A stretch of DNA of 64,000 nt. Origin: Hyaloraphidium curvatum SAG 235-1. Its lineage: Eukaryota; Fungi; Monoblepharomycota. This document shows, piece after piece, positions 1-58,131 of the stretch. Numbering within the stretch: the first letter of the stretch is position 1; every line of letters starts with the position of its first letter. The translations under genes were made by a program, and so were the position numbers. The notes beneath the pieces are model-generated. The model did no database searches, was not told the DNA's origin, and saw only the letters and a list, made by a program, of their open reading frames with translations. The stretch is taken from positions 372,001-436,000 of the forward strand of contig JAIVFI010000021.1 in the NCBI GenBank assembly GCA_025558095.1, read 5' to 3'.

Positions 1-1215
1 GCGGGAGCCTTGCAGCAGCACGCGTGCGACGGGTCCAATTTCGCGGACGGACGGCTCGCGGACTACCAGTTCGGATCGTGGGCCAACTTCCGGACTGCGC
101 CGAAACGCCTCAGGCAGCAGCTGTTTCGGTCTACCTTGGTAGACAACGTCGACCTGGAAATCTTTCGCGTCGTGAACGGCTCGCTCTCGGTAAAGAACTG
201 CCACGTCGATTCGGGGTGCCTGCGCGGCCTCAACGGCGGGCGACTCTACCTACCCCTGCTGCAATTCATCCTGGACACCGCACGGCACGCAGGTGTACGG
301 CTGCCGGACGTCCGCATCATGTTCTTCAGCACCGACGGGGTCGGTAGCGTCGGCCAGACGCACCCCATCGCCACTGCCTCCAAAGTGCAGGGAAGCAAGT
401 TCCTCCTGTTCCCCAACTGGGAGCACGCGGAAAAGCTCCTGAAGGCGCGCGATCGGAACGCGTGGGTAGCGACTTCGGCGTGGGAGGAGCGTGCCCCGGT
501 GGCGGTCTTTCGCGGAGGGTTGACGGGGCACGATTTTGGGCCCGCGGGGTTCGTCCCCCTGCAGCAAATACGAGTCAGCGTGGTGCGACAAGGCGCGCTG
601 TATCCGGATCTGATCGACGCCGCGTGCGACTGGAACTCCCCCGGGCTGCCGGCCAGGGGCTTTACGCCGGAGATGAGGGCCAACATCCTTGACAAGTACT
701 GCAAAAACGGCACTTTTCTATCCATGCAGGATGCCGCGAACCGCTACAGGTTCCAGGTGAGCACGGACGGATTCGGCGCCGCCTTCCGGACCTTTGCCGT
801 CCTCTCCTCCGGCGCTGTTCCCATGCTGCCGCGGGACGGGGCCTTCAGCGAGCACTACTACCCTCTGTTGAAGCCGTGGGTGCACTACGTGCCCACAGAG
901 TCTTTCCGGCTGCACGAGGCCGTGTCGTTCCTCAGATTGCACGACGGGCTCGCCCGGCGGATCGCAAAGGCCGCCCTGGCCTTTTCGCTGAGCAACCTGA
1001 CGCTCAAGGGCACGTTCTGCTACGTCCTCCAGATCTGGATGAGGCTGGCCGAGCTCCAGGAGGGCCTGGACTGGGAGGCCATCGAGCTCGAGTTCGCGGC
1101 GGAGATGCAAGACCGCCGCTGGCCTCCCATGGCGAACGCGACCGCGGATACCGGAGGCGCCGATGCGCGCGCCTTTGTGCCGTACTCTGTGTGGAAGCAG
1201 ATCATGAAGGAATAG
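1..1215 (+). CDS. Glycosyltransferase family 90 (CAP10/KDELC-like), 5' end probably outside the window
   Basis: Motifs W..R...AVFRGGLTG, YRFQVSTDGFGAAFR, L.SGAV and FSEHYYPLLKPWVHYVP are typical of Glyco_transf_90. The ORF is open to the window edge and has no introns. Confidence 0.85.
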   Translation, partial: AGALQQHACDGSNFADGRLADYQFGSWANFRTAPKRLRQQLFRSTLVDNVDLEIFRVVNGSLSVKNCHVDSGCLRGLNGGRLYLPLLQFILDTARHAGVRLPDVRIMFFSTDGVGSVGQTHPIATASKVQGSKFLLFPNWEHAEKLLKARDRNAWVATSAWEERAPVAVFRGGLTGHDFGPAGFVPLQQIRVSVVRQGALYPDLIDAACDWNSPGLPARGFTPEMRANILDKYCKNGTFLSMQDAANRYRFQVSTDGFGAAFRTFAVLSSGAVPMLPRDGAFSEHYYPLLKPWVHYVPTESFRLHEAVSFLRLHDGLARRIAKAALAFSLSNLTLKGTFCYVLQIWMRLAELQEGLDWEAIELEFAAEMQDRRWPPMANATADTGGADARAFVPYSVWKQIMKE

Positions 1216-1345
1216 ACTCCGTCCCCTCGGGACCGCACGGCTCGCGCATTCCCCCCCCCCAAAGAGGCATCGCAACTGTATTTACAATCGTGGGTATCGG
1301 GACATCGAAGCAACTCCGCCCAAGCAAACCAGCACCGCACCGCCT

Positions 1346-3148
1346 TCACTGCACCGGCGTCTGCGGATAGGGCGACGTCGACAGCCCCGAGAGGGGCCAC
1401 GTCGGCGTCGCTGGCGGCGACATGATCGCCGAAGAACCCCGCGAAAGGGAGCTCTTGCTGCTGTACGACGACGAGGTCCGGGAAAGCGAGGCCATCGAGC
1501 CGTTGGGCGGCCGGTCGCCCGGCGACAGCCACGGGTGCTGCCAGATGGCCTGGGACGTCAGCCTCCGCGAGGGATTGGGGGCCAGGATCTTGCGCACGAG
1601 ATCGCGCGCGGCTTCCGAGATCCTGGCCGGCTCCCTGGGGGGCGTCTGCTGCGGGGCCGCGGGGTCACCCGGGTCCGTCAGGGACCTCGCCAGCAGCCGC
1701 GGCGGCCGCTCGTCGGGGAAACGAAAGTCCGCGCGGCAGATTTTGGAGTAGAGCGACTTTGGCTTCTGGTTTGGGAGCAGCTGGAAAGGCAGCTGCCCGG
1801 TGAGGATGGCGAAACTGGGAAGCGGGGTCGGGATTGTGAGCGAAAGGGCTGCCGCGAAAGGTCGTCCGACCCACAGGATGACGCCGCACGCCCAGATGTC
1901 GACGCCGCGGGGATCGTACTCCTGTCCGAGGATCATTTCCGGTGCCGCGTACTCTTCGGACCCGCATCGCGTCGTCAGCCGCACGCCGGGCTCGAAGAAC
2001 CGCGAGAGTCCAAAATCGGCGATTTTGATGTGCGGCGGTTCCGCGGGTTCCGGTGCGGCGGCATCCGGCCCGGCGGGCGGGGCGAGGGAGGAGGGTTGCG
2101 GGGGGCGGGATGTGAGGAGGATGTTTTCCAGCTTGAGGTCGCGGTGCGTGACGTTGCGCGAATGCAGGTAGTCGACGCCTGGATCGCGTTCGCGCATATA
2201 AACAGCCGCGAATAGGGCGGCCGAAGGCAACGTACCCTCCAGGATCTCGGAGAATATGCGGCGAGCCTCCTGTTCCTCGAGGCCCGACCCGCGGGCCGCC
2301 TGCTCGCTCGCCACCCAGTCAAACAGCTCCCCGCCGGGCACGTATTCCATCACCAAGCACGAGCAGTCCTCCAGCTCCACCGTGTCCAGCAGCGAGATGC
2401 ACCGCGGGTGCGGGGTGATTGCGCGCAGCACGGCGATCTCGCGTTCCCACGAGGCCATCATGGCCTCGGACGCGAGCATCCTGCGGCGCGGGCGCGGCGT
2501 TGGCGGTGCGGCGGAGGAGGACGGTAGCGCGGCGGGCACCCACTTTTTCTGCACCGTCTTTATGGCGACCAGGCCGCCCGTGTCCGGATCGCGGCCCAGC
2601 TTGACCTTGGAGAAGGTGCCGACGCCGACGGTGCGCTCGATCAGGTAGCGCCCGACGTGCAACAGCCCGCCCTCGGGCGACGGCGGGGGCGAGCCGCCGT
2701 CCAGCGCGCGCGGCAGGTGTTTGGAGGGTTGCATGATGGCGGGTGTCATGCTGGTGAGCGACACGGCGCGCTCGACGTTCGGCGCTCCGGCCGCGAGGTT
2801 CGAACCCAGCGCCGAGTAGCTGCGGTGGCGCTGCAGCGCGGCGGGGTCGGGGCCGGCAGTGCCGGGCGACGAGTCGTCCGCGCTCTGCGGCGACGAGTCC
2901 GCGCCGCCGTCCGAGGCGGGGCCGCGCGCCCTGCGCATTGGCATTGCGGGCGCGCGGAGCGGCGGCGGCACCGGCGGGCCGGCGGGCGCGGCGCCGAGCG
3001 GTGCGGCGGGCCCGTCCGACACCGCGCGGCGCACAACCTCGAGCGGCGCAGACGCCGACGGCGGCGGCGGGCCGAGCAGCGCCGAGCCCGGCAGGGCCGC
3101 CGCCACGGACAGCCGGATCGCTGGCGGCCCCGGCCCGCCCGGTTCCAT
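1346..3148 (-). CDS. Ser/Thr protein kinase, CAMK group (SNF1/Nim1/Prr1-like)
   Basis: GVGTFSKV, VAIK, HRDLKLEN, DFG, TRCGSEEYAAPE and DIWACGVIL. Two in-frame GT-AG introns at 2179-2235 and 1815-1874. Likely ATG at 3148 (MEPGG). Confidence 0.92.
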   Translation of the reverse strand: MEPGGPGPPAIRLSVAAALPGSALLGPPPPSASAPLEVVRRAVSDGPAAPLGAAPAGPPVPPPLRAPAMPMRRARGPASDGGADSSPQSADDSSPGTAGPDPAALQRHRSYSALGSNLAAGAPNVERAVSLTSMTPAIMQPSKHLPRALDGGSPPPSPEGGLLHVGRYLIERTVGVGTFSKVKLGRDPDTGGLVAIKTVQKKWVPAALPSSSAAPPTPRPRRRMLASEAMMASWEREIAVLRAITPHPRCISLLDTVELEDCSCLVMEYVPGGELFDWVASEQAARGSGLEEQEARRIFSEILEGTLPSAALFAAVYMRERDPGVDYLHSRNVTHRDLKLENILLTSRPPQPSSLAPPAGPDAAAPEPAEPPHIKIADFGLSRFFEPGVRLTTRCGSEEYAAPEMILGQEYDPRGVDIWACGVILWVGRPFAAALSLTIPTPLPSFAILTGQLPFQLLPNQKPKSLYSKICRADFRFPDERPPRLLARSLTDPGDPAAPQQTPPREPARISEAARDLVRKILAPNPSRRLTSQAIWQHPWLSPGDRPPNGSMASLSRTSSSYSSKSSLSRGSSAIMSPPATPTWPLSGLSTSPYPQTPVQ

Positions 3149-3240
3149 GGCGGCGTGCTCCGCGTCCCGCGAGATCACACAACACCGCCTCGCCCCACCC
3201 CGCCCACCCCGCCATGCACGCCCCGCGGCACTCGGCCCGC

Positions 3241-5193
3241 ATGCGCACGCCGCTGCCCCGCGGGCTCGCCGTCGCGCTCGTCGCGCTCGCGATCCTCGCG
3301 CTGCTGGGAATCGCCGCCGCCCAGAACTCGACGGACTCCTCCGCGGCAACTTCGGCAACCCAGTCCACTCAGACCGCGTCATCGGCCTCCGCTGGCGCCA
3401 CGACATCAGAGACACCCTCCGCCACCTCATCGGCCGCGTCGTCGACCTCGGAAACAACAACGACCCCCTCCAGCTCGCCCACGACTTCGCCGACGCCCTC
3501 AACCACAACCACAACCACATTCGCCCCGCCCACGCCGGTCGGGACGCCCGTCTACTACGCCGCCGACGGTGCGGGCCTGCAGTGTGCCGCCGCGGGCTGC
3601 CAGATGGTCAGCGGCGGCGGCGACCCGTACCAGCGGCTGTGCTCGCCCTCGCTCTCGCCGGACTGCTCGCAGGTGCTCCTGCAAGGACCCTCGGGGAACT
3701 GCATCCTGGTGCCGATCGGCGGGAGCTCTTTGTCGGTCGGCCGCTGCCCCGGCTCGGCGCCGTCGCGCCTGCTGCAGCGGCTCTGGCGCCTGGTCCAGCG
3801 GCAACTCACTCCGGAAAACCTCCAATTCCTCTTTGCGGCCGGCGGCGGAGGCGACACGGCAATCCAGAGCGCGCTCACCAACCTGTGCATGCTGCACCCG
3901 GCCGGGGCCGGGGCCGTTTCGCTGGGGTCCTGCGGCTCGGCCGCGAGCCAGTTCGTGGCCCGCCAGGATCCGCCACCTCCCCCGACCACCACGGTAACCA
4001 CAACGGAACCGCCTACGACGACGTGGGTTTCAAGATGGGCCTGAATGAGCTCTGCTGCGGATTCTAATTGTCGCCAAAGCACGACCGCCGTTCCTACGAC
4101 GACCAGCAGCTCCGAAACGACGACATCGACGCAGTCAACGACGTGGGTCGCCTAATGCTTGTGTGCGTGACGCATCTGACGCCGCCTTTGCAGGACCACG
4201 TCTCCAACGACCACGTGGGGCCGTCGTGTTCCCGGCCTCGATCATGCTGACGTCTCGCTCCATTTGCAGAACAACAAGCAGTCCCACGACGTCCAGCTCC
4301 ACCGAAACGACCAGTTCGACGACCAGTTCCACGGCCTTGAGCACGACATCGAGCACCCTGTCCACGTTTGCGAGCACGTCCGTCTCGACCACGACTTCCC
4401 GGACGACTTCGGCATCGACGAGCTCCGGAACGGCCACGGCGACCCCTGCTCCCACGTCTGACGGCCTCTCCGCGGGCGCGATCGCCGGCATCGCCATAGG
4501 CGCCGCCGCGGGCGCCGCGCTCTTGGGCGTGGGAGCCTTCTACCTCATCAAAGCCCAACGGCCACCGGAAAAAATCGTCGTTCAGGGAATCTCCAACGAG
4601 GAATCGTACGGCGCGCAGTCCGCCAACCGCGCCTCGGCCGCAGGGCCTTCCCCGACGTCTTACGCCTCGGGCGCCTCGCAGGCCGCGGCCGCGTCCAACG
4701 GCGCGGGGTACGCCTCGGGGGTCGCGCCGGCCGCCGCGTTCGGCGCCGGGGCGGCAGCGGCGGGCACCGTGGCGGGGGAGAGCATCGCGATGGCGCCGAT
4801 CGTGCCCTACGGGCCGCCGGCGGCTGGCGAGGTGGCGACCGTCGTGCGGCCGCACATTCCCCAGCTCTCGGACGAGCTCCTCCTCAGCGTGAGTTCGCTG
4901 CCATCAACGTGGCCTTTTAAGCGGAATGCTGAATATGCCTGCACAGGTGGGCGACACGGTCACGATCCAGCGGGTCCACGACGACGGATGGGCAACGGGG
5001 TAAGCTTGTCGGAGCCTCTGACCGTTCAACAGCTAATCGGACCGGCTCGTCTACGCAGCATCAACAATGTTACGCGGGTGACCGGCGTCTGTGAGTTGCA
5101 ATGCTGCGCGCATGTATCCTCCTCTGACAGCACTGCGTGACGGCAGTCCCCATGGCATGCGTCTTCCGGTCGGGCGGTGCGCTTCCGCAATGA
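3241..5193 (+). CDS. Type I membrane protein: signal peptide, Ser/Thr-rich stalks, Cys-containing (ricin-B-like?) ectodomain, TM helix, C-terminal SH3
   Basis: Signal peptide MRTPLPRGLAVALVALAILALLGIAAA and TM segment LSAGAIAGIAIGAAAGAALLGVGAFYLI. The spliced C-terminus VVRPHIPQLSDELLLS/VGDTVTIQRVHDDGWATG/INNVTRVTGV/FPMACV is an SH3 domain. Several short introns (e.g. 4023-4079); stop at 5191-5193. Confidence 0.8.
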
Positions 5194-15876: not shown

Positions 15877-17145
15877 TCACCTACGAAGCTTATATACTCC
15901 AACACAATCAGTCAAACTATGATTCATGCCTGGTTGAGATGGGCAACTGCGAGGTGGCATCCATATTCTAAAATGCCTCTTATTGCTGGTATAGAGTGAG
16001 CAGTTCTCGACGCTATAGACAGTAGACGTTGGAGATGAAAGCGCATAAACAACGTGACTGAACGTCGATTCAGACATGGTGAGAATCTTTGTCTGCAGAC
16101 GAGACAAGATCAGTATCTCTTCCCACGCAGTGTGGACTGTTTGCGCCCGGAGGGATGGGGCATTCTCCATGGATGCTTGCAGTGAAACATTCAGATGCAG
16201 TAACCGATTGCTGAAATGCGAAACCATGTGGCGGCGAAAATCAATCGAATCTGTGGCGAGGAAGACATACTTCCATGTTCCTGCTTCAAGGAAAGTCCGC
16301 CTAATGCAATCTGCCGCCGCAACCGTATCCTTCACATAAACCACCCGCAAGTGTACCCCAAGAATGGCCGATGTGTCCCACTGGTCCATGCTTCCAAGCA
16401 GCTTCTCTTGCTGTTCTCGAATATGTTGCTGCACGGCCCCAGTGGGTGCAAGAAACGCGGCCGAAAGGTGCCCAATGATGCTATTTGTTGCGGGGAAGTA
16501 GCTTTCCAGCAAAGGCTTGACGTTCGGATTCTCAGCGAGGGAAGCAATGTAGTAGAGGTTCGATGAGATCGCCAGGTTCGGGCATTTGCTCAGTAACGGA
16601 TCTGAGGTGAAATTGGCGCAGGACAAGGCATTCCAGCAGCCATCCTTAGGCGATTGCTCCGGTGGGGCATATATCGATAACGTCCATTCACACTGCGCAG
16701 ATGGCAGCGGTTCGTTGGCCGGCCACCGGATGCTCGCTGGCAGATTAACGATGTCTGACAGATCCGCAAGTTCGGCCGCACCGTTCCATGCGTACCGAAA
16801 GGACCGCCGAAGAACTACAGACAAAGTCAAGGCCGAAACGAATTGCAGGATGTTGTTTCCCAATCCTTGCTTATTTCCTTTGAAAATAACAGTCCCCGCT
16901 GGAGTTGAAGGTAACTCGTTCAAACGGCGGAAGTCACGGAGGAAAGTGGAATTCTCGTCAACCGGAAAAGGAAAGAAGCCGAGATGTCCCACGTGAGCAG
17001 AAGAATTTAACGGACGTTGCAGGATCGAATGGCCAATCGTGTGTAGGGAGTCTGTCCGTTGGAAAGAGACGTGCAATGCGAAGAACACAAGGAGCACAAC
17101 AGAAGCCGGCATCAAAAGATCCGCGAGAATCTGCGTCCTCACCAT
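15877..17145 (-). CDS. Fucosyltransferase-like GT-B protein (GT23/GT37/NodZ-like), type II membrane
   Basis: QGLGNNIL, LGVHLR, VFLATDS and AWEEILILS...STFS motifs, plus an N-terminal signal anchor. Intronless. Confidence 0.8.
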   Translation of the reverse strand: MVRTQILADLLMPASVVLLVFFALHVSFQRTDSLHTIGHSILQRPLNSSAHVGHLGFFPFPVDENSTFLRDFRRLNELPSTPAGTVIFKGNKQGLGNNILQFVSALTLSVVLRRSFRYAWNGAAELADLSDIVNLPASIRWPANEPLPSAQCEWTLSIYAPPEQSPKDGCWNALSCANFTSDPLLSKCPNLAISSNLYYIASLAENPNVKPLLESYFPATNSIIGHLSAAFLAPTGAVQQHIREQQEKLLGSMDQWDTSAILGVHLRVVYVKDTVAAADCIRRTFLEAGTWKYVFLATDSIDFRRHMVSHFSNRLLHLNVSLQASMENAPSLRAQTVHTAWEEILILSRLQTKILTMSESTFSHVVYALSSPTSTVYSVENCSLYTSNKRHFRIWMPPRSCPSQPGMNHSLTDCVGVYKLRR

Positions 17146-17290
17146 GATGCATTGACTCCCGCACTACTGGGCATCCAATGTTTTAACGCATAGTTAATTG
17201 CTTCGAGGATAGACGGGTCGCTTCGTGCAGCTCGCACTACATTATTGGCCCCTATTGCTACGACACTTCTTGTTTCCATTCCAAATTCTC

Positions 17291-18247
17291 ATGTTCTCCG
17301 GCCGAACAATATCTATTGCCACTGCGATCTTCCTCGTCTTCTTGCTCTCCTCGTCTTTCGTCTTTTACCGCCCGCCATCGGGGACCGCTCATGTAGACGT
17401 AGAAAACCCCGCCACCCGATTCTGCATTCATCGCAGTCTTTCCAAGCAGATCGACGTAGCGTCTCTTCGTTCCTCGGTCGCCGCTGCGACGCGATTTTGG
17501 ACTCGTGGCATTGCACAAACGCTTCAATCGATGCTCGATTTAAACGAAACCGGAGGTTACCGGGATGGGACTGGCCCCACCGGGCACCACGTCTTCGACG
17601 TCCTGGGCCCCATTGGGCCACGCTGTAGACAGATCGACAGGTTGGGAACTGGAGACTTGGAGAAGAGAGTTTGTGGACTCCAGTCAATGATTGGTGACCA
17701 GGCAGCATGCCACGTAATCTCGGTCGGTGGCAACAATCAATGGGAGTTCGAAGCAGCAGTACATACTCGGACAAGCTGCAAAGTCCACACATTTGATTGC
17801 ACCGTTAATGGGACGGTCCCACAAGCGTTGCAAGACCGAGTGTTCTTTTACAAACTCTGCTTGGGAGCCAAAGACATGCCCGAAAACTCCAAGAGGCGCT
17901 TTGTAAACTGGGCAACGATGCTTCAAACCGCGGGGTTAGATCGATCTCCGTCGTACGTGAAGATGGATATCGAGGGTTACGAATTTCCCGCTCTCCGGAG
18001 CATTTTGGACAGCAACAGGAGCCTTCTGCCTCTCCAGATAGCTATGGAGATACATTACATGACACATGGTCACCTGATCGACTTACCAATGCACAATCGG
18101 CTGCTCACTCCGGGAGAAATCGCCCTTTTCATGATGGAGCTCTTCCACACTGGCCAGTACCTGCTTCTGGACCGGAATGACAACCCTTTCTGCCAACATT
18201 GTAGTGAAGTACTCCTTGCAAGATTCGCGTGTGACTCCACTACATAA
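17291..18247 (+). CDS. Methyltransferase, Methyltransf_22/METTL24-like, signal anchor
   Basis: GDLEKRVC, CHVISVGGNNQWEFE, VHTFD, VKMDIEGYEF, QIAMEIH and NPFCQHCSE. ATG at 17291. Confidence 0.82.
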   Translation: MFSGRTISIATAIFLVFLLSSSFVFYRPPSGTAHVDVENPATRFCIHRSLSKQIDVASLRSSVAAATRFWTRGIAQTLQSMLDLNETGGYRDGTGPTGHHVFDVLGPIGPRCRQIDRLGTGDLEKRVCGLQSMIGDQAACHVISVGGNNQWEFEAAVHTRTSCKVHTFDCTVNGTVPQALQDRVFFYKLCLGAKDMPENSKRRFVNWATMLQTAGLDRSPSYVKMDIEGYEFPALRSILDSNRSLLPLQIAMEIHYMTHGHLIDLPMHNRLLTPGEIALFMMELFHTGQYLLLDRNDNPFCQHCSEVLLARFACDSTT

Positions 18248-19204
18248 TGGGGCTTGGCGGTCCCTCACGCTTAGTCACGGGCGGCACCTTTTCGTCGGTG
18301 ATGCTGCGGCCCATAGTCGCACGCAATGCAGATTCGACACCGGCCGCCCCGTTCACGGCCCCACTACACTCGGCAGCATTGCGATGCTCCGAACAGTCTC
18401 CTCTTGTGAGGCTCCGACAAGGAGACAATCACACCACCTTTCGGTCCATCTCCTCAGGCAAAGTGTCTGCGAATCCTGCTAATTTTGATACAACAAGGGC
18501 GATCCGGGAATGAAGTACGCTGGATAATCGGGAGGCAAGCTCGTCCGTGTTGTTTGCATACCAAGTAAAGGATCCTTGAAGAAACTGGCCAAGCTCTCTT
18601 CGGCGTTTATGCACCCGATTCGTTCAAGGGGCACGATTCCAGCGCGCGAACGAAGCCGTCGAGCATATAATCAACAGAGGTCCGGCGGACTGAATCGAAA
18701 GTTGATTGGGTCCAGCGCCCTAGATACGGGTTGGCGACGCAATCTGCGGCCGTGGTGACAGAGACGAACGTGAGACTACTTGAGTCGGAGCGCAATGCGA
18801 AGAGGAAGTCGGCCGACAAGCGATGACAGTCCAAGTACAACTGTCCTGGGATCCGGTGCCAATTTTGCAGTCGACCACAGGCTACGGTTTGGACCTTCTT
18901 TAGTCAATCACGGAAGCCAAATGGAGCAAGTAGCTACCAGCACGAACAGCCGAGCCAGCTGGATCGAGCGAGAACGGCAGAGACACTAGATCATGTTGGA
19001 TGGATTGAAAGGCATTGAATTGAAATGCGGTTCCTTGCGAAAAACGCACTGACGGCCCGAGGGGACCGGCATAGAAGTTGATCTTCAACTACGGTTGCTT
19101 GCGATTGAAGTAGTCCGCGCGAGTAAAAGTGATGGAAACGAAACATCGCCGAATTCCCGAGTCGTTCCGTCCCGAGGACCGTACTATTCTGAAGTTCAAC
19201 TACC

Positions 19205-21163
19205 ATGAATGTCACAGAGGATGAATTCGACAGCACTCTGTTCGGCTTCAAGGTTGGGCGATTGTCAGCGACGGCTTCGGGGGACCAGAGCTCCATCATC
19301 ATGGCAGCCCTGCAGAAGGCGCATTCGGACGGGTTCCACCTCATCTACATCTTTGGTCCAACCCTAAAAGACACGGCGCAAGAGTCGCATGCCGGCTCAA
19401 CGGTACCAGGTTTCAAGGTCGATGTCAGAACCGAGTTCTCGTGTAGACTACGGGACCTCGACCCCAAGGCGCTGGTAAAGGCCGCGTACCTCTCTCCAAC
19501 CATAAGAGTCGTGAACATGTGCGAAGATTCCGCGGCTCTGAGGAAGATTGCGCTTGCCGCGGGAGAATGGTCGCGCTACCGTACGGACCCTTGGCTGCCC
19601 AAGAGCGCCTTTCACGACATGTACGAGCAAATGCTGACGAACTCCATCAACCGCTCGTTTGCCGACGAGATGTTCGTGGCCCGGAATGTGGAAAATGGCC
19701 AGGAAGCCGGCTTGATCACTGTGAAAACCAAGGGCTCAAATGTTCAGATCGGCCTCCTTGCTGTTTTACCCGAGTACCGCCAACAGGGCATTGGTTCTAT
19801 GCTGCTGAGTCGCGCTGCTTTGTGGGCGTTGGAGAACATTGGATGGCAGCCTGAAGCCACCATTTCAGTGATCACACAGGGCCGGAACTACCCCGCTTGC
19901 CAGTTGTACCGCAAGTTTGGCCTGCACGTGGTCGGACAGCAGGACGTGCACCATGCTTGGTTGCCCCAGCATCTAATGGAACCTCTTTCACGCGGTGATA
20001 CCGGGCCTGTACCGTTCTGTAGGCAGCACATCGTCGGCCAGGAGGCAACGTATGTAGCGCAGGTGCTGTCCACAGGACTGGACAGTGCTTCTCGCTTCAC
20101 CAATATGTGCGCCTCTCGTGTGCAAAGTCTTCTCGGTCCCGAGAGCTCCCGAGTGCTTATCACTCCGTCATGTACCGCAGCTCTGGAAATGGCTGCCCTC
20201 CTGTGCGATTTGCAGCCGGGTGACGAGGTCATCATGCCCTCCTTCACATTCTCGTCAACGGCAAATGCGTTCGTTCTCCGCGGAGCTGTACCCGTATTCG
20301 TTGACGTCCGCGCCGATACGCTTAACATTGATGAGGCTCTCATAGATGCGGCAGTTACAGCAAAGACACGCGCAATATGCTGCGTTCACTACGCAGGCGT
20401 CCCGTGTGAGATGGATGCCATCTGTAGCATTGCACGGCGACATGGTTTGCTGGTAGTGGAGGATGCCGCACAGGGTTTTCTTTCCACGTACAAGGGTCGT
20501 CAGCTTGGCTCGATTGGAGACTTCGGATGCATCTCCTTTCATTACACCAAGAATGTTATTTGTGGAGAAGGGGGCGCGCTGTCGATCAATCGATCAAGTG
20601 AGCGAGCCCGACGAGCGCTGCTAGTGTGGGAGAAAGGAACAAACCGCTACGATTTCCTCATGGGAAAGATCGACAAGTACGAATGGGTGGATGTTGGGTC
20701 ATCGCACGTCCCAAATGAAGTTTCTTGTGCCATCTTGAATGCGCAGCTGGAGCGGTGCGAGGAAATCACGGCCAAGAGGGTGGCCAATCACGCGCGATAC
20801 CTTGAAGGCTTCAAGGATCTCATAGCGCAGGGTGTCTTTCGTGTCCCCCACGTGCCGCCTGGATGTACGATCAACGGCCACATTTTCTTCCTGGTTTTCC
20901 CTTCCACGGACGTCAAGGAACAGTTTGCAGCGGGCTTGAAGGCTGCTGGCATCACGGCATTTTCGCATTATTCGCCGTTGCACAGTTCAGTAGCAGGCTT
21001 GAAATATGGCCGAGCATCAGGAAGGATGGAAATTACAAGCAGCGTGCACGCGAGATTGCTGAGGCTTCCTATGTGGCCAGGGCTTTCGAGCGTAGAAGCT
21101 GCTTCGATCATTGATATGGTGCACAAACTTTCCGCGCGCTTCGTGCAGTCCAGAACGAGCTGA
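19205..21163 (+). CDS. wecD-wecE: Fusion of WecD-like GNAT acetyltransferase and WecE-like dTDP-4-amino-4,6-dideoxygalactose transaminase
   Basis: N-half: FDSTLFG, SRYRTDP, IGLLAVLPEYRQQGIG and TQGRNYPACQLYRKFG. From aa 269: VPF, TPSCTAALEMAALL, GDEVIMPSFTFSSTANAFVLRGA, VEDAAQG, SFHYTKN (PLP Lys449), EKGTNR, DKYEWVDVGSS and HYSPLHSS. 652 aa, intronless. Confidence 0.92.
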   Translation: MNVTEDEFDSTLFGFKVGRLSATASGDQSSIIMAALQKAHSDGFHLIYIFGPTLKDTAQESHAGSTVPGFKVDVRTEFSCRLRDLDPKALVKAAYLSPTIRVVNMCEDSAALRKIALAAGEWSRYRTDPWLPKSAFHDMYEQMLTNSINRSFADEMFVARNVENGQEAGLITVKTKGSNVQIGLLAVLPEYRQQGIGSMLLSRAALWALENIGWQPEATISVITQGRNYPACQLYRKFGLHVVGQQDVHHAWLPQHLMEPLSRGDTGPVPFCRQHIVGQEATYVAQVLSTGLDSASRFTNMCASRVQSLLGPESSRVLITPSCTAALEMAALLCDLQPGDEVIMPSFTFSSTANAFVLRGAVPVFVDVRADTLNIDEALIDAAVTAKTRAICCVHYAGVPCEMDAICSIARRHGLLVVEDAAQGFLSTYKGRQLGSIGDFGCISFHYTKNVICGEGGALSINRSSERARRALLVWEKGTNRYDFLMGKIDKYEWVDVGSSHVPNEVSCAILNAQLERCEEITAKRVANHARYLEGFKDLIAQGVFRVPHVPPGCTINGHIFFLVFPSTDVKEQFAAGLKAAGITAFSHYSPLHSSVAGLKYGRASGRMEITSSVHARLLRLPMWPGLSSVEAASIIDMVHKLSARFVQSRTS

Positions 21164-21580
21164 GGGAGCGGGACGCTCAAAGGCTAGCTTTCGGGCTGCG
21201 TCGCTGTGACCGATGGCACTAGCGGGATGACGCATGAACTCTAAGGGGATGGGGCTGATCCGGACCGTGTGGCGACGCTGCTGACCGTCGCGGTGGGCAT
21301 GTTTGGGCTGATTGGGGGCGCGGGGGTGCACCTGACTGTTGCATGAGGATGAGGAGTGTGCATAGCTAGAGCTAGCAAAGCAAAGGGAAATAGACCTCCA
21401 CATTGTAGACCCACGTCCCAACAGTTCATTTACTAGCCTTCGCTGAACAGCCTTTCTAGGTTGGCGGCTGCGAAAGTCGACGCTCCGGCAGTCTCCTGGG
21501 GCCGGCTCACGATTTCGAAAGAATTAGACGAATGATCAGACATCAAACGAGGCCGTTCTCGCTTCGTTTATTGGTGATTG

Positions 21581-22816
21581 TCAGCAACCATGACTGGGAA
21601 GACAGTAGGGAGGTTGCTGGAGCACCGAATTCGGCCAGAGGACAGAAGACCATTCAAATGGCCTACGTGGATTCCATGTCCAGTCTAGCGACTTTGGGGA
21701 TGTTGGTACCTTGTACGCTTTGAAGGTTTGCGTCCAGGGCATGGAAAAGTTCTGTGAGCAAGAGCTCTCATTTTTGACATTTTCACAGTTTGCTTGGTGC
21801 TGGATAGGAAGAAGGAGTTGTGTGGTTTGGTTTGCATTCAAAAAAAAAGATGTCAGCAGGTACAGGTGCGGATCGCCCCACCGGTGCTTAAATGCACCGT
21901 GGACGTTATCAAAATGCCACACGGTGTTCAGGTATGCGGGCGAACGGGCGAAAGCGGTATCAAATATGAAAGCGAACCCGTACCACGTCCAATACTTGGG
22001 CTTTCGATTCACATCCTGAAGGGGCTTTAGCTGATTGTACCTCAACAAGTCTTCCGCAGTTTCATATAGATTCACGACCACGTGGGGTTGATCGATGACC
22101 TCAACTACATATGCCGCCATAATATTACGCCTCTTCAGATGTTCAAACACGTCGAAATCGATCCGTTCCACTAGAGCCGCGTCTGCATCCAGTTTAAAGA
22201 TGTATCGGTATCCAAAGAAAGCCCGATGCAATGGCCAGCGGTAGATGTTTGTTCGAATCATATGCAGGTATTCGGGATACCAATTGAACAATTTGTATCC
22301 AGTCCGATTAAAGACTGCAAGATACTCCTCATCGATCAAGGCACGGCCAACGAACTCGATTCTGGAACGCGTCCAAGATCTGATGGTATCAATAGTCTGT
22401 TGAGGAAGATCCTCGTGGAGCAAAATCACGGGATAGTGAAACTGGTCGTTGAACGAGACGTCAAGAGATTGCAAACATCTCTTCAACAAGTGTGCCCGGT
22501 CGTCATCATGGTGGCTCCACAATATCATGAAAGCGCCCAGGCCGGATGTTGGGAAGTCTGCACTGTTTTGTAACGCGGAGCCCCAGACATTAGCTTCAAC
22601 GCTACGAGAGTAGAACTTATAGAAGTCTTGAATAAACGGATTATCGTTCGTCTCTCTCCTCTTCTCTTCTGCAACGTCCGCTTTTTCGCAAAAGCTGGCA
22701 ACTTCCCCGGGATTCGAGTGATCCAAAGCGGAAACCAAGAATGCAACGATGGCCAAAGGAAGAAGGACCTTAACATTCAAAGCTCGCTGTACTTCGGCGC
22801 TCAAGGGCATGGTCAA
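21581..22816 (-). CDS. Glycosyltransferase family 15 (Kre2/Ktr-like alpha-1,2-mannosyltransferase)
   Basis: Signal anchor followed by SLDVSFNDQFHYPVILLHE, YLHMIR, YRYIFKLDAD and HRWGDP. Confidence 0.85.
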   Translation of the reverse strand: MTMPLSAEVQRALNVKVLLPLAIVAFLVSALDHSNPGEVASFCEKADVAEEKRRETNDNPFIQDFYKFYSRSVEANVWGSALQNSADFPTSGLGAFMILWSHHDDDRAHLLKRCLQSLDVSFNDQFHYPVILLHEDLPQQTIDTIRSWTRSRIEFVGRALIDEEYLAVFNRTGYKLFNWYPEYLHMIRTNIYRWPLHRAFFGYRYIFKLDADAALVERIDFDVFEHLKRRNIMAAYVVEVIDQPHVVVNLYETAEDLLRYNQLKPLQDVNRKPKYWTWYGFAFIFDTAFARSPAYLNTVWHFDNVHGAFKHRWGDPHLYLLTSFFLNANQTTQLLLPIQHQANCENVKNESSCSQNFSMPWTQTFKAYKVPTSPKSLDWTWNPRRPFEWSSVLWPNSVLQQPPYCLPSHGC

Positions 22817-23018
22817 TGCTTTCCGCTGACAACCAAATCCTGGGAAGAGTGCAGAAGATTCATGGTCTACAAACAGTTAAGTTGTATGGCGGCCGGAACC
22901 GCACTTCCGCCTTTCGCGAGGGCCGGACAACTCAAGGGTTACAACTCAAGGGTTCGAGGGTTATGAGATGATGAGAGCGAATAATCGACACTTGAATCAC
23001 AGCTCGTCCGCAACCTCA

Positions 23019-24142
23019 ATGACCCGAGTCTGCATCGTCGGCACCGGAGCAATCGGCTCGTTCGTCGCGGCCAAGTTGGCCTTGACTGCCGTGAACCCGC
23101 CGACTGTCACGGTGGTTGCGCGAGGCGCGAACCTGGAAGCGATCCGCTCAGGTGGCATCTCGCTCCTGGACCATGACGGCGTGGAAATTGGTCGTGCCCG
23201 CAACGTGGTTGCCGTCGAATCGACAAAGGAAGCGGGGCCGCAGGATGTCGTCGTGCTGGCAGTCAAGGCGCACCAGGTTGGAGACGTCGCGGACTCGCTC
23301 GCGAATCTGTACACCGACAACACCGTGGTGGTGACCATGCAGAATGGGTATGTCGTGTGGCGCGTCTCCAACCGCGATTTGTGCTGAACGGACTCACCAT
23401 GTGAAGGATTCCGTTCTGGTACTTTCGGAACCTCTCGGCGCGGCCGGATCTCGCGTCGACCGCCATCCGGACCGTGGATCCCGACGGCACGCTCGCAGAC
23501 AGGGTGCAGGTGGAGCGCATCATCGGGTGCGTTGTGTACCCGGCAACCGATCGGCCCGCTCCGGGGTTCGTGCGCCACATCGAAGGGGACAGGTTCCCGG
23601 TCGGAGAACTGGACGGTCGCCTGACGCCGCGGGTCCGAATGGTGTCGGATCTGTTGCAGGCAGCCGGGCTGAAGGCACCAGTATTCCACCACGATTCCGA
23701 CAAGGCGGGGACGAAGGACATTCGCGACGAGATCTGGCTCAAGCTGTGGGGCAACCTGTCCTTCAACCCGATCTCGGCGCTCACGCACGCAACGCTTGTT
23801 GATCTCTGCACGTTCCCCTTGACGAGGGAACTGGCGGCTGCAATGATGAGGGAAGCTCAGGGGGTAGCGGAGAGCCTGGGTGCGCACTTCAGGGTGACAC
23901 TGGAAAAGCGAATCGCCGGGGGCGCTGCGGTCGGCAAGCACAAGACATCCACACTCCAAGACGTGGAGGTGGGAAACGACCCAGAGGTAGATGCTCTTGT
24001 CGGCGCTGTGGCGGAGCTCGGGACAGTGGCCGGATTGCCCACGCCGCATATTGACGCGGTTTTCGCCTGCGTGAAGCTGCTTGCCAAGGTCATGGCGGAG
24101 GAGAAGAGCGCATGTAGGATGGTTCCAGTCGTCGTACAATGA
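23019..24142 (+). CDS. panE: 2-dehydropantoate 2-reductase family (PanE/ApbA), bacterial-type
   Basis: IVGTGAIG and VLAVKAHQ. QNG/IPFWYF is joined by one intron (23348-23406). Also WLKLWGNLSFNPISALT and HKTSTLQD...EVDALVG. Confidence 0.9.
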
Positions 24143-24147
24143 GACTT

Positions 24148-25376
24148 TTACTGGCAATCGCAAGTCTGCTGTGTTTTGGCCTCCCACTCCAACCTCCAGT
24201 TCTCCACAGCGGCCCGCAGAACGGGCCATCCCTCGGTGCTGCGCGCGCTTTCGACGAGCTCGTACATATTCGGGAACGCAGAAAGGATCAACGGCTTGAA
24301 GCAGGCCGGTGGTAGCGCCAAAAGCAGCAGTGCGAATCGCTCGCTTTCGACTCCGAAGTCCGAACCCGCCTCGAACACCAACGACGAAACGTCTTTGAAG
24401 AGGGGATGCTGGCGGACCGTCGCATCAATTAGAGGTGTCGTCCTCGGAAGGAACATGTCCATAATGGAGGCAGGCAAATCTGACACATGGCTGACCACCG
24501 TGGTGACGGCGAGGTCTATGACGGATCGCAGCGTCGGCGATGTCGTGAATTCCATCGCCTCTCGCTGTTCCGCGGCACTCAGGTGGTTGACAGGAGGGTA
24601 CAATTGCCGAAAAGCGTCCGGGATCACCTGTGAAATGAGCGTGTCCAGTCCAGCCCGCTTCACACCAAGTGACGGGGCGGAAGTGAGGTCAATGTTGAGC
24701 TCCTCATTTGCAGTTGCCATGCTCTCGCCCAGCTTGCAGACCGACATGCTCGACTTCCGCATAGGCACGGGAGTCCCCGGAGCAGACGCTTGCGACAATG
24801 TTTGATTGCCCTTCGCCTTACGAAGTAAGTACCAGCCGCGCGACAGGCCCGTTTCGCGGTCGATCTGCTTCATGGCTTCGAAAAGCAGCCGTGCAGGGGC
24901 AAAATAGGCTGGCCACAACGGTCCCGTGAGCGTGAGTCCTGCTTGCGCAATGCGAACGCCTACCTGGATACTTGAACCGAGCAACATCAAGCACCAGAGC
25001 ATACGGCTCTGATCCATCGGCCGGCTCGTACAGGGCAGCCACGGGACTGAAGTGCCCATCGCCCGTCTGACCCAGGTGCTTCCGCGAAAAGCTCACGACC
25101 ATCTGCACATCACCGGAGCCACTGCACACCTCCTTCAGGTCAGCAAGGAAGTCTGCGTATGTGAAGCGATCACCACGCTTGGCCACCACGTCCAGGCCAT
25201 TGCAGGTTGCCAGGCGCGCAAAAGCGCCGAAAGTAATGCCCCTGCCATGTAATTCCTCCAGCGGAGATAGGCAAGAAAGAGTTGCGTCCGACCACCAGCG
25301 CCAGACCCCCTTCCAAGGTCGTTGTGGGTCGATCGCCAGCGCGTTAAGTGCCATCGCCAGTGCAGCCGGCCCGCAG
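24148..25376 (-). CDS. Phytochelatin synthase copy B (lacks an adjacent canonical 5' exon)
   Basis: An acceptor CAG is followed by CGPAALAMALNALAIDPQRPWKGVWRWW, GQTGDGHFSP and LVLDVARFKYP. After intron 24909-24963 comes AYFAP...DRETGLSRG and a long C-terminal tail. The Cys-His-Asp triad is present. Confidence 0.75.
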
Positions 25377-25387
25377 CTGCGGCACGC

Positions 25388-26590
25388 TCAAACAGCACCA
25401 CGGAGTGCCGTCATCAGGAAGCGAGAGCATGCATTGACCACGCCCGCCAGAGTCGAAGTGGCCGTGGTTGATCTACGCCAAGCTGCAGTTGAAAGTGATG
25501 ATGCTAAGCTGGCATGGATGATTGAACTCGACGGTGTCGAACTCGACCATGTCCGCGAGAGCGCAGGGACGTGAACACGGGGTCGGCAGCTAAGTCGATG
25601 GATGGGAAGCACGTTTGACCCCGGCGGTAATAGCGCCCTAGCTCCGAGGACGGCGCTGCCAGCGCAGACATCCCGTTCTCCGCTTGTCATAAAGTGCCCC
25701 CGCTTCTCCACCAAATTGAGTCCAAATTTCCGGCGAGTGAATGCGCTTTTCGAAAAATGGCGGGAAAAAAACGTGGTCCCGCCAAGGGAGGTCACGCGTG
25801 GCCCCGTGGGCTTTGCAGGCGATGTGAAGTCAGCCCCACCTGAAGGAGGGACAAAAAGTGGCGGTGGATCTGACGCCCGCGATAGGACCGCGAAACCCCT
25901 AGGCTTGCCAGTCACGCTGTCTAGTTTGCCCAGAGATGCCCACAGGGTGGAAATGTCGGCCCAGTACGTGGGGTATTTGAATCTGGCGACGTCCAGAACC
26001 AGAACGCGATCGTCCTGAGGAGAATAGCCACCCAAAGGGGAGAAGTGGCCATCACCTGTCTGACCTAGCGTTGCCCGGTCGTAAGCAACGCAGAGCACAG
26101 CCGGCATCCCGGTGCCGATGGTGGAGAAGGACGAAGTGAGCGCGATGGCCCTCCGGAACTCGTCTTCCGAAGACGAGTCAGCCCGAAAAACGTCCGCCCT
26201 GAGCCCGTTGCACCCCGCAAGGCAGGCAAACTCGTCCAAAGTGAGGCCTTTCTCCCGCACCGTCTCGAGCGGTCGGCAGCAGTCAAGCAGAGTCTCGTCG
26301 TAGTGACGCCAAACCCCCTTCCACGGTCTCCCTGGGTCTACCTCGAGAGCGTTGAGAACGGTGGCAAGGGTGCCAAGGCCGCAGAACGCGGGTTCGGATT
26401 GGGTCACGAGGTGCGTAACGAGAAGGAAGAAAGCGTCGAGATAGGAGGAGGGGCGGCCGGAGGATGCCTCGGCAGGGAATGGCAGGTCTGAGGAGCCCGC
26501 GGCCATCGCGCGGCCAAAAATCGCGCGGCCCTCTGATGAGCTGAACGGGACCAGAGAGGGCGGGAGCGGCCGTCTGTAGAATGTCTGCAT
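25388..26590 (-). CDS. PCS: Phytochelatin synthase copy A (glutathione gamma-glutamylcysteinyltransferase)
   Basis: TFYRRPLP, TQSEPAFCGLGTL, DPGRPWKGVWR, LDCC, GQTGDGHFSPLGGY, LDVARFKYP and DSVTGKPRGF form a complete catalytic domain to ~25880. The C-terminal 160 codons are of uncertain origin. Confidence 0.92.
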   Translation of the reverse strand: MQTFYRRPLPPSLVPFSSSEGRAIFGRAMAAGSSDLPFPAEASSGRPSSYLDAFFLLVTHLVTQSEPAFCGLGTLATVLNALEVDPGRPWKGVWRHYDETLLDCCRPLETVREKGLTLDEFACLAGCNGLRADVFRADSSSEDEFRRAIALTSSFSTIGTGMPAVLCVAYDRATLGQTGDGHFSPLGGYSPQDDRVLVLDVARFKYPTYWADISTLWASLGKLDSVTGKPRGFAVLSRASDPPPLFVPPSGGADFTSPAKPTGPRVTSLGGTTFFSRHFSKSAFTRRKFGLNLVEKRGHFMTSGERDVCAGSAVLGARALLPPGSNVLPIHRLSCRPRVHVPALSRTWSSSTPSSSIIHASLASSLSTAAWRRSTTATSTLAGVVNACSRFLMTALRGAV

Positions 26591-50564: not shown

Positions 50565-50696
50565 TATGGCAGCGCACCGGCGCAGGATCGAGTGATCGTG
50601 ATCCACGCATGCGATGGCTCTGCGGTTGTCGCGCGCCCCCCGCGCGCACGACTACGCTTGTCACAGTTGGACCCCCCCCCCCGGCGTACACAGGGA

Positions 50697-56148: not shown

Positions 56149-58131
56149 ATGACTAAAGCGCATCGCCAGCCGCAGGGCGACCGAGGATTAGCTGAAAGCA
56201 GATACGCCGGTCCTATTGTGGTCGCCATCGCATGCGCGCTGGTTGCCTGCAGGACCATGGCCTGCCAGCAGGTCCTGGGGTCGCCCATCATTCCGAATGC
56301 CACGTACAGCCCGCTTCTCGATACGCGCGGCGTCACAGAATCACGCGTAAGGGTCACGGCAACTACTGTGCTTCCCTTCGCCGGTGTAGCCGCCGTCCTC
56401 GCAAGCGGTCGCCACGGGACCCTTTCATGGTTTCGTGACCGCCTAGCTCTTTCTTGACTGACTCTAACATCCGGCTGCCCGTCGCAGCTCTGGAGCAGTC
56501 GTCGCAGCCGCCTCCGGCCGTCTCACGCTGCTGACGGCTGCGAGCTGTCTCTACTACAAGAAAATCGGCAACTCAGCCTTCGTTGACAGCGTTGTTGCCA
56601 CTCCCGCAAGAAACGGTGCCTCTGCACCCTTTGGTGCGCTGCGTGGAACGGTGTTGTATATTCCTCGGGCGTACACCACTGCCCTGAAGAACGGTAACAT
56701 GTTGGTTGCCTCCCGGCATGATTATGCCTTAGGTGGGTCCCGCCAGACGTTTTTTCTACCAAACCAACGCGTCAGGGCAGTGTCACTTTCAGCCACGTCA
56801 CGCCGACCTGCAACCTTCCAACTGTGGAGCCAATCCCGTCGCCAAACGACCATTGTGACCACCGCAGGCTACCCCATTGACACCGGTGGCTCACTGATGT
56901 GGAAACATCAATGCAGGACCGTTCTGGATCCTGCGAGGCCTACGTTTTCTGCCCCGTGCAACATCACAGCAGGTGAAACCGGAGCACCTCTTTGGATTGT
57001 TGAAACAGGCCCCAGGACGTCTTCAGGCAGTGAGGGTTTACCGTGTCGCGATTTGGGCCACTTTGACCCGTTTAAGCAGTCCGTCTAGTTGGTGTCTGGA
57101 CGTCATTTGCTAACGGTACTTCGGAGAGCCAAGCGCGCATTGCAAATGGGGATGTTGCTAGCTTCTTGGGGGCCGCCGATCGCCTCGGCCCGTCCCCTTG
57201 CGGCAGTCACTGCTCTCGTGATGCCGTGTGCACCTCAGATGGGCAATCTGCAACCTGCATCTGCAAGGCAGGCTTTGCAGGCAACGGCTTAGTCTGTAAG
57301 CGCAAGCCAAATCCCTGCCTCGTCAACAACGGCGGCTGCCGACCCGAGGCAACTTGCACAAACTCGTTTGGTGAGGCCCAATGCCAGTGCAAGCCTGGCT
57401 ATTTTGCCCGGGCCGGGATTTGCGTCCGTACAAACCCTTGCCTTGTGGAGCACGGTGGCTGCAGCTTTAATGCAACTTGTGATAACGTTTCCCCAGGTAC
57501 GGCTCGTTGCAGCTGCAAACCTGGTTTTGCTGGAAATGGCCGGGCTTGCGCCTTTGTGGACGCCTGCCAGTATGAGCAGTACAATGGCCGGCCCTGTGCG
57601 CCAAATGCAACGTGTGCCAACCTCGGCATGGATGCAGTTTGCACCTGCAAACCTGGCTTTGTCGGAGACGGGAAGACCAAGTGCTTCCCTGACCCGTGCA
57701 TAGATGGCGGAGGCTGTTCAGCCAACGCAACGTGCTCCTGGAATTCAACGACAGGCGTTGCCCGTTGCGCATGCAACCCCGATTGGGTCGGTGACGGCCA
57801 GACCTGCTTTGAGGATCTCTGCACGCCAGATAGGATTAATGCTACGTGCGGGATCCCCGAGTTTTACTCGTCGTGTTCGACGGATCCAGCAACGGGTGCT
57901 CCGAGCTGCGTGTGCGTTCAACCAGGGCAGGAAAATCCTTACTCACTCCCGAAGTGCCGGTGCTCCTACGGCACGGAACCCAAGCGGGACCCAATCACGG
58001 GCAACATTAACTGCGAGACGGTTTATGTTTGCTGCCAGATATTTCGTCCGCCGGCACCCTCACTGTCGTGCCGAAGCATGGTTTCCTGCTTGCACCCGGC
58101 ACCTGACTTGGGGTGTTGTAGTGGCGGTTAA
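56149..58131 (+). CDS. Secreted V8/trypsin-like protease homologue followed by EGF-like repeats
   Basis: Spliced N-part CSGAVV...LLTAASCLY...PARNG..PFG...HDYAL, TAGYP and AGETGAPLW. Then about six EGF units (NPC....GGC...ATC......C.CKPG(F/Y).G.G..C). The 3' end may extend to ~58273. Confidence 0.75.

Follow-up and report, generated by a model that had tools for sequence, protein, structure and literature searches.

Introduction

How did a gene that combines two neighbouring genes of a bacterial operon come to lie in the genome of a fungus, and what might it do there? The gene in question was found in a stretch of 64,000 nucleotides (nt) from Hyaloraphidium curvatum SAG 235-1 (GenBank assembly GCA_025558095.1, contig JAIVFI010000021.1, positions 372,001 to 436,000 of the forward strand), which was analysed at its full length and will be referred to as the window. 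Hyaloraphidium is a non-flagellate monoblepharid fungus that was long taken for a colourless alga, and 4-amino-4,6-dideoxyhexoses such as viosamine and 4-acetamido-4,6-dideoxygalactose (Fuc4NAc) are considered bacterial and giant-viral sugars. An earlier note on the window had proposed that a bacterial wecD-wecE operon pair was acquired by this eukaryote and fused into a two-step enzyme for a 4-acetamido-6-deoxyhexose nucleotide sugar. Our analysis identified the gene as the fungal member, present in two copies, of an undescribed and widespread eukaryotic family of fused WecD-WecE proteins of bacterial ancestry. It is probable that the encoded protein is a cytosolic bifunctional nucleotide-sugar enzyme and that the wecD-wecE fusion family to which it belongs is an old eukaryotic one.

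Results and Discussion

Domain architecture of the fused gene

The gene consists of an uninterrupted, intronless open reading frame (ORF) of 652 codons followed by a stop (Table 1). Its start is the first ATG, an in-frame stop lies four codons upstream, and there are no internal stops. Pfam searches of the 652-aa ORF detected GNAT domains at amino acids (aa) 143-239 and a DegT_DnrJ_EryC1 domain at aa 280-639 (E 1.4e-76). The full-length predicted model showed two well-folded domains and a predicted local distance difference test score (pLDDT) below 50 at linker aa 259-264; because of this low-confidence segment, the mutual orientation of both domains is not fixed by the model. The N-terminus, judged by its sequence, is without a hydrophobic stretch, in keeping with a synthesis of nucleotide sugars in the cytosol.

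The C-terminal half was clearly assigned to the WecE sugar aminotransferases. It reached 478.1 bits on the WecE equivalog model PRK11706 (NF008687; cut-off 375) and 448.9 bits on the WecE subfamily model TIGR02379 (cut-off 434.85), with aa 269 as the first matched residue in either case, and scored much lower on PseC, ArnB, DesI and the remaining NCBIfam models. Alignment with Escherichia coli WecE (PDB 4PIW) extended over the full length with 360 bits. The lysine that binds pyridoxal phosphate (PLP), K449 (nt 20549-20551), lies in the motif S-F-H-Y-T-K-N, which is aligned with S-F-H-E-T-K-N in 4PIW, and was invariant in 21 of 21 aligned fusions. Two residues ahead of K449, Tyr447 takes the place of the Glu in the WecE motif S-F-H-E-T-K. 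This position is occupied by Tyr in 42 of 47 fusions, by Phe in four and by Arg in a second fungal copy described below, whereas Glu was found in 77 of 80 prokaryotic loci and Tyr in one. The change from FHETK to FHYTK is, as judged from these alignments, a family signature, that is, a family-wide trait. The spacing between the lysine and G-E-G-G was tried as a second signature and rejected, as it amounts to four residues in the eukaryotic and in most prokaryotic proteins and does not discriminate.

For the N-terminal half, the top acetyltransferase model was WecD PRK10975 (NF008212) with 68 bits compared to the enterobacterial cut-off of 219, and 49.6 bits were obtained on TIGR02382 (cut-off 195.1). 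A word-based search with the GNAT half alone recovered only fragments of fusions, and a profile search was needed to detect stand-alone relatives. The profile, built from the N-terminal halves of 21 fusions, was searched against 1.84 billion representative proteins and yielded 2063 proteins below 1e-30, most of them stand-alone proteins of ~240 aa that matched end-to-end over profile positions 3-261. In all seven stand-alone matches of this size that were sampled, the best NCBIfam model was WecD, over its full length and below the enterobacterial cut-off. The best PDB sequence match of the profile was E. coli WecD (RffC; 2FS5, E 2.7e-17; see also 2FT0), and the motifs S-R-F and T-Q-x-x-N-x-x-A-x-x-x-Y are common to both proteins. 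Consistent with this, the AlphaFold model of aa 1-256 (pLDDT 92, predicted template-modelling score 0.87), when compared to PDB chains, matched 2FS5_A best (TM-scores 0.69/0.78 over 256 columns) and showed the two-subdomain fold of that enzyme. The acetyl-CoA motif R192-Q-Q-G195-I-G197 is encoded at nt 19778-19795, and Y235, invariant across the fusion family, is aligned with the Tyr of the E. coli N-x-x-A-x-x-x-Y segment. Although the position ahead of WecE is also that of E. coli WecD, identity to the latter is ~20%, and the fungal half belongs to a broad, non-enterobacterial group of WecD-like proteins. Judging from profile and predicted model, the N-terminal half is an entire WecD-type unit and not merely a GNAT core.

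These data confirm the architecture given in the earlier note, namely a single intronless ORF of 652 aa with a WecD-type GNAT domain followed, from nt ~20009, by a WecE-type enzyme with its PLP lysine intact; for the WecD part the profile and the sequence and fold match to 2FS5 bear it out, with NCBIfam scores below cut-off. The FHETK-to-FHYTK change that the note had pointed out is likewise present, as a feature common to the eukaryotic fusions and not specific to this gene.

Distribution among eukaryotes, prokaryotes, and viruses

Approximately 50 full-length homologues of 640-720 aa carrying both domains were obtained (97-99% query cover, 40-57% identity). The closest relatives of the window protein are eukaryotic fusions with 50-57% identity over 98% of the length. 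Holders of the fusion were the chrysophytes Epipyxis and Spumella (both in EukProt) and Ochromonadaceae CCMP2298, the eustigmatophyte Nannochloropsis oceanica (KAM3572724), the green alga Tetradesmus obliquus (WIA14774), and the prasinophytes Pycnococcus (XRB07638) and Pseudoscourfieldia. Dozens of environmental eukaryotic contigs also carry it, each as a single uninterrupted ORF, and its neighbours on such contigs are eukaryotic (Nup98 and Yju2; U3 small nucleolar ribonucleoprotein and a mitochondrial carrier; TRM10 and BCS1; on a TARA Oceans scaffold, a MYST acetyltransferase and adaptin). In the alignment of 21 fusions, the N-terminus, the GNAT core, the junction H-x-W-L-P-x-H-L and the whole WecE half were conserved. 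The window protein has the single ORF, the order GNAT before DegT, this junction and the S-F-H-Y-T-K motif of the chrysophyte-type members (clade A, see below). Domain order, linker and Tyr motif are the same in the database GNAT-DegT fusions; these carry automatic names only, whereas the window protein is the only member seen from a named fungus, and no other named fungal protein was present among the 120 best matches of the full-length search.

In the open-access literature searched, no description of a WecD-WecE fusion in eukaryotes was found. A paper of 2026 reports a multi-copy "WecE" in Pseudoscourfieldia that is frequent in viruses of Mamiellophyceae, with the fusion unmentioned. As a separate observation, a Joint Genome Institute metagenome contig of 54 kb (L096) encodes a 646-aa fusion of the green-alga/Nannochloropsis type, flanked by genes for glycosyltransferases (GT25 and GT2-like), two UDP-GlcNAc 2-epimerase-like proteins, an FkbM-type methyltransferase and a sulfotransferase. 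This locus is a glycan gene cluster of a eukaryote or a giant virus.

Among the 80 best prokaryotic loci, no fusion within the same ORF was detected. A WecD-like gene lies just upstream of WecE in 11 of them, and this order was found in Erwinia, Pantoea and Hafnia as well as in distant phyla. The two ORFs overlap by 20 nt in a metagenome-assembled genome (MAG) of Pseudomonadales and by 4 nt in one of Omnitrophota, and are 13 nt apart in another MAG, so that a small insertion or deletion would be enough to fuse such a pair. The N-to-C order of the fusion is that of the prokaryotic pairs. Thus, the earlier note was right in stating that wecD lies directly upstream of wecE in Enterobacterales and in reading the gene as an operon-order fusion of bacterial ancestry. 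The only prokaryote-labelled WecE with S-F-H-Y-T-K is encoded on a 4.6-kb contig of a gammaproteobacterial MAG (L144, JANQIS010000153.1). This contig opens inside the WecE gene, leaving the GNAT half out of view, and its protein forms a long branch that lies between eukaryotes and prokaryotes in the tree; the contig may represent a eukaryotic fragment binned wrongly, or a relative of the donor.

The survey of eukaryotes and giant viruses that the note had recommended yielded many eukaryotic fusions and none among the best 80 of 311 confirmed matches on viral contigs. None of these 80 matches starts before residue 253, and the WecD half is not reached. A viral origin of the fusion was considered and rejected, as the genes among these 80 matches are exclusively stand-alone and WecE-like.

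Phylogeny of the two halves

A careful tree of the WecE half was calculated from 24 eukaryotic and 26 prokaryotic rows, the latter from more than ten phyla and including Enterobacterales, Betaproteobacteria, Firmicutes, Bacteroides, Planctomycetota, Omnitrophota, Nitrospira, Chloroflexi and others. In this unrooted tree, a single branch parted the eukaryotic from the prokaryotic proteins (ultrafast bootstrap 98, Shimodaira-Hasegawa-like approximate likelihood ratio test 80, recovered in every one of 200 bootstrap trees), and clade A (95/97) included the window protein together with ochromonad and Epipyxis sequences. A larger, quick tree of the same half agreed with it. The tree of the WecD half again contained clade A including the window gene (99), besides green-alga/Nannochloropsis, prasinophyte and separate bacterial clusters. 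Phylogenies of each half, as the earlier note had proposed, were thus congruent, with the eukaryotic copies on one side of a supported branch, and this congruence argues for one shared history as expected of an old fusion. A distant DegT paralogue from the same genome was tried as root of the WecE tree and discarded, as this outgroup had a branch length of 10 and drew in the GC-rich paralogue.

In the tree of full-length proteins (34 rows), the two fungal copies were sisters at 94, a further homologue (P0024, from sequencing run SRR23967301) joined them at 80 as their nearest relative, and clade A was supported at 99. The P0024 gene lies beside a gene for a LacZ-type beta-galactosidase of glycoside hydrolase family 2 (GH2; L104:3-2222), which has a 61%-identical intronless counterpart in the fungus (C44:102064-104364). 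This is a hint that the source of P0024 may be a distant relative of the fungus, or that a transfer was shared. A LacZ-type GH2 enzyme is in itself unusual for fungi.

The simplest reading of the trees is one transfer from bacteria to eukaryotes and one fusion event, though up to three events may have occurred. According to this scenario, a bacterial wecD-wecE pair, adjacent or overlapping in that order, would have been fused into one frame and given rise to the old eukaryotic family; the fusion would have preceded the arrival of the gene in the fungal lineage, where it was presumably duplicated afterwards. The proposal that the pair was captured and fused for this eukaryote is not supported, since chrysophytes, a eustigmatophyte and green algae possess the fusion as well. 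The earlier note had itself named a broad, vertically inherited eukaryotic clade already described as the finding that would speak against it; a broad clade exists, be it by vertical descent or by transfer among eukaryotes, and no paper describing it was found.

Host genome and second copy

The genome searched comprises 55 contigs with a total of 31.9 Mb. Zn2Cys6 (Zn_clus) domains numbered at least 96, compared to none in the control genomes, and several genes for chitin synthases and one for HSP90 were detected, each of them with introns of ~55-60 nt (exons of HSP90 and of the dehydratase mentioned below were used singly). No light-harvesting-complex genes were found in the genome, and the flagellar marker Radial_spoke gave no match in it, the control genomes being all prokaryotic. 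Among named proteins, one from Hyaloraphidium curvatum stood out as relative of the phytochelatin synthase encoded in the window; it maps to contig C23 of this genome at 689.6-691.0 kb, and a lead to Zoopagomycota was dropped in its favour. The genome is that of a true fungus, almost certainly Hyaloraphidium curvatum (Monoblepharomycota), and the earlier description as fungal-type was correct in view of the Zn2Cys6 domains and the chitin synthases with their short introns. As the host genome has introns, an intronless fusion gene is notable.

A second copy of the fusion was identified on contig C39. It is 49% identical to the window copy, carries the motif S-F-H-R-T-K and has a GC content at third codon positions (GC3) of 0.91; GH114 was the only family recognised in its surroundings, plus GT34 ~10 kb away. 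The presence of this sister paralogue indicates that the fusion is older than the duplication in the lineage of the fungus.

Predicted function

The glucose-1-phosphate thymidylyltransferase RmlA was not detected above its cut-off in a six-frame search of the genome (best 39.6 bits compared to 361). Genes resembling 4,6-dehydratases are present, one exon matching best PDB 6VLO, which we take to be Mimivirus R141, and an RmlD-type reductase gene was found as well. This combination fits a UDP-rhamnose-type route, the UDP-4-keto-6-deoxyglucose of which could feed the fusion enzyme. The feed suggested in the earlier note is therefore plausible as regards the genes, the UDP carrier itself being a deduction. 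From the gene content, the carrier is most likely UDP.

In the proposed pathway, UDP-glucose 4,6-dehydratase would supply UDP-4-keto-6-deoxyglucose. The WecE-type domain, using PLP on K449 and glutamate, would convert the NDP-4-keto-6-deoxyhexose (NDP, nucleoside diphosphate) to an NDP-4-amino-4,6-dideoxyhexose, and the WecD-type GNAT domain would next move an acetyl group from acetyl-CoA onto that 4-amino group. This would yield an NDP-4-acetamido-4,6-dideoxyhexose (Fuc4NAc type, provided that the stereochemistry of WecE is retained), which glycosyltransferases would presumably use for a wall or secreted glycan.

Several known systems can be compared to this scheme. E. coli WecE (RffA; PDB 4PIW/4ZAH) has the same fold type, homology over the full length and the same PLP lysine motif; the fungal protein differs from it by the acetyltransferase fused on, by Tyr in place of Glu and by the lack of a gene cluster for enterobacterial common antigen around it, and in a eukaryote without RmlA the enzyme, unlike that of E. 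coli, probably does not use dTDP-sugars. In the UDP-viosamine route of Mimivirus, the R141 dehydratase, the L136 aminotransferase and the L142 N-acetyltransferase are encoded by three separate genes, and L136, of low identity to the known bacterial viosamine-forming enzymes, forms the gluco epimer (PMC4691112). That route, likened here by pathway logic alone, follows the same reaction sequence outside bacteria with UDP as carrier and a eukaryote-type UDP-glucose 4,6-dehydratase. A precedent for the evolutionary course is the MviM-"WecE" fusion of Karenia brevis, in which a bacterial operon pair was fused after transfer to eukaryotes and then spread (Nosenko & Bhattacharya 2007, PMC2064935). 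It differs in its partner, a GFO/IDH/MocA dehydrogenase, and in its aminotransferase, which belongs to an FdtB/QdtB-like 3-aminotransferase subfamily. Some chitin synthases of fungi have also been described to bear DegT domains (Gonçalves et al. 2016).

Alternative explanations

An assembly chimera, or a contig contaminated from an alga or a bacterium, might be suspected, as the nearest named relatives are algal. We consider this exceedingly unlikely. The gene lies at ~391 kb of its contig (C21), which reaches at least 553 kb and on which Zn2Cys6 genes and a dehydratase gene with an intron are also located; within the window, the gene is flanked by those for a kinase and a phytochelatin synthase, and the paralogue is located on another contig with GC content typical of the host. 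Moreover, an independently built Logan contig spans window positions 18906-22000 and beyond with zero differences, which argues against a local mis-join; as it stems from the sole sequencing run found, probably the data of this genome itself, it attests local contiguity only. It is hardly more likely that this fungus received a wecD-wecE pair recently and directly from bacteria, with fusion in situ, a scenario in line with the earlier note. The lack of introns in an intron-bearing genome, the position within an island of lower GC (GC3 of 0.63 compared to 0.86-0.91 for other genes) and the lack of a further named fungal protein among the 120 best matches would agree with such an event. However, the nearest relatives are eukaryotic fusions and not bacterial proteins, the supported branch of the WecE-half tree separates eukaryotes from prokaryotes with a congruent WecD-half tree, the Tyr motif and the linker are common to the algal copies, and the sister paralogue on C39 is compositionally ameliorated.

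It is also conceivable that only the WecE half is produced, the upstream GNAT frame being unused or separately translated. The deposited gene model (P0001, window 19976-21163) indeed comprises 395 aa and begins at Met258 (nt 19976-19978), which falls exactly in the linker. Nevertheless, the 257 upstream codons are open and keep every residue invariant in the family, the upstream part gives a confident WecD-like predicted fold, the predicted start is aligned with the N-termini of the homologues, and all homologues keep a single frame. On these sequence comparisons homology supports the 652-aa ORF over the deposited model, and production of the WecE half alone appears improbable. More serious is the possibility that the same architecture serves another chemistry, with the gluco epimer (N-acetylviosamine), another NDP-keto-sugar or a non-acetyl acyl group. 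The Tyr in place of Glu in 42 of 47 fusions compared to one of 80 prokaryotic loci, the score of the WecD half under the equivalog cut-off and the fact that the known eukaryote-associated pathway yields UDP-viosamine (PMC4691112) are in line with it, whereas two curated WecE models recognise the WecE half above their cut-offs and the models of other specificities give it much lower scores. We regard a different chemistry as possible, though doubtful.

An old eukaryotic fusion encoding a cytosolic bifunctional enzyme accounts best for these observations, though several points weigh against it. The WecD half stays well below the enterobacterial cut-off, and the deposited gene model leaves out the entire acetyltransferase half. 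The exchange of Glu for Tyr beside the lysine could signal a different keto-sugar or stereochemistry, and the nucleotide carrier is deduced solely from the absence of RmlA in the six-frame search. The sole sequencing run obtained has, with 27 Mb of contigs, the appearance of genomic DNA and not RNA. The trees are unrooted, a distant outgroup having given long-branch artefacts, and the link of the neighbouring genes to glycans consists of weak domain matches lacking synteny with other holders of the fusion.

Genomic neighbourhood

The coordinates of the fused gene, its parts and further features are compiled in Table 1.

Table 1: Features of the fused gene, its immediate neighbours and two further DegT genes (window positions unless a contig is given).
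Feature	Position	Strand	Evidence or remark
Whole fused gene	19205-21163	+	ORF, Pfam, NCBIfam; Logan contig identical over 18906-22000
WecD-type half, aa 1-256, N-terminal subdomain and GNAT core	19205-19972	+	Profile, PDB, predicted model
Linker, aa 257-268, after the H-x-W-L-P-x-H-L end of the GNAT half	19973-20008	+	
WecE-type PLP-dependent sugar 4-aminotransferase half, aa 269-652	20009-21160	+	NCBIfam, 4PIW
Y447-T448-K449, PLP Schiff-base lysine and family-specific Tyr (Glu in prokaryotic WecE)	20543-20551	+	
422-aa intronless ORF, borderline GT37 (xyloglucan fucosyltransferase)	15877-17145	-	23.3 bits, cut-off 23.4; GC3 0.56
Methyltransf_22/FkbM-like methyltransferase ORF, intronless	17225-18247	+	GC3 0.59
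GT15-like (alpha-1,2-mannosyltransferase family) ORF, intronless	21581-22816	-	GC3 0.56
DegT gene L005	C24:605087-609001, frame 376-2451	+	
DegT gene L006	C5:902950-906588, frame 100-2715	-	

The fusion gene lies in a block at ~16-24 kb of the window with a GC content of 0.52-0.55 compared to 0.60-0.76 in its surroundings. The four intronless genes of this island (window ~16000-24000) have GC3 values of 0.55-0.63, and the kinase at window 1349-3520 has 0.86. A different mutational regime, low expression or a later arrival could be the cause. As the upstream ORFs of the window at 5.4-15.6 kb gave no Pfam matches, a glycan gene cluster would comprise no more than the three adjacent genes. Neither the C39 paralogue nor any of eight loci of homologues had a neighbour in common with the window gene.

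Other features of the window were noted in passing. Two phytochelatin-synthase-like tandem segments are located on the minus strand at 24959-25420 and 25652-26590, a TGA falling within the matched part of the upstream one, and a further phytochelatin synthase paralogue is located on another contig (C23:689597-690963). On the plus strand, an intronless 902-aa ORF with GT2 and GT1 glycosyltransferase domains (50592-53300) is followed by an intronless 750-aa DUF5672 protein (53589-55841; GC3 0.57), and an ORF at 57166-58131 contains at least five EGF_3 domains, a domain type uncommon in fungi.

Further DegT genes of the fungus

Five more DegT genes were found in long open frames of the genome (L003, L004, L005, L006 and L007). 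One of them is fused to an FdtA/WxcM-like 3,4-ketoisomerase, representing an FdtA-FdtB-type pair in a single ORF, and one to an NAD epimerase/dehydratase; three of the five carry N-terminal extensions of 240-470 aa with no Pfam match. These fusions point to a broader bacterial-type toolkit for amino-deoxy sugars that was repeatedly built as fusions. Tentatively, and with more doubt than confidence, this toolkit might have come from other eukaryotes (two WecD-WecE copies, FdtA-DegT, and DegT fused to a short-chain dehydrogenase/reductase) and might serve a surface glycan with UDP-4-acetamido-4,6-dideoxyhexose as precursor that would be new to Fungi, the Tyr-for-Glu switch of the family adapting the enzyme to UDP-sugars.

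Conclusions

As a practical upshot, the deposited gene model needs extending by 257 codons. The family adds a clear case in which an operon pair became one eukaryotic gene that was apparently then passed between eukaryotes, and it may offer a compact single-gene tool for producing 4-amino-4,6-dideoxyhexoses. Chrysophytes, eustigmatophytes, green algae and one fungus all possess the conserved two-step fusion, and the making of such sugars is thereby implied for a large number of microbial eukaryotes. To students of fungi, the gene is a pointer to a hitherto unrecognised glycan, either of the wall or secreted, in a lineage that diverged early.

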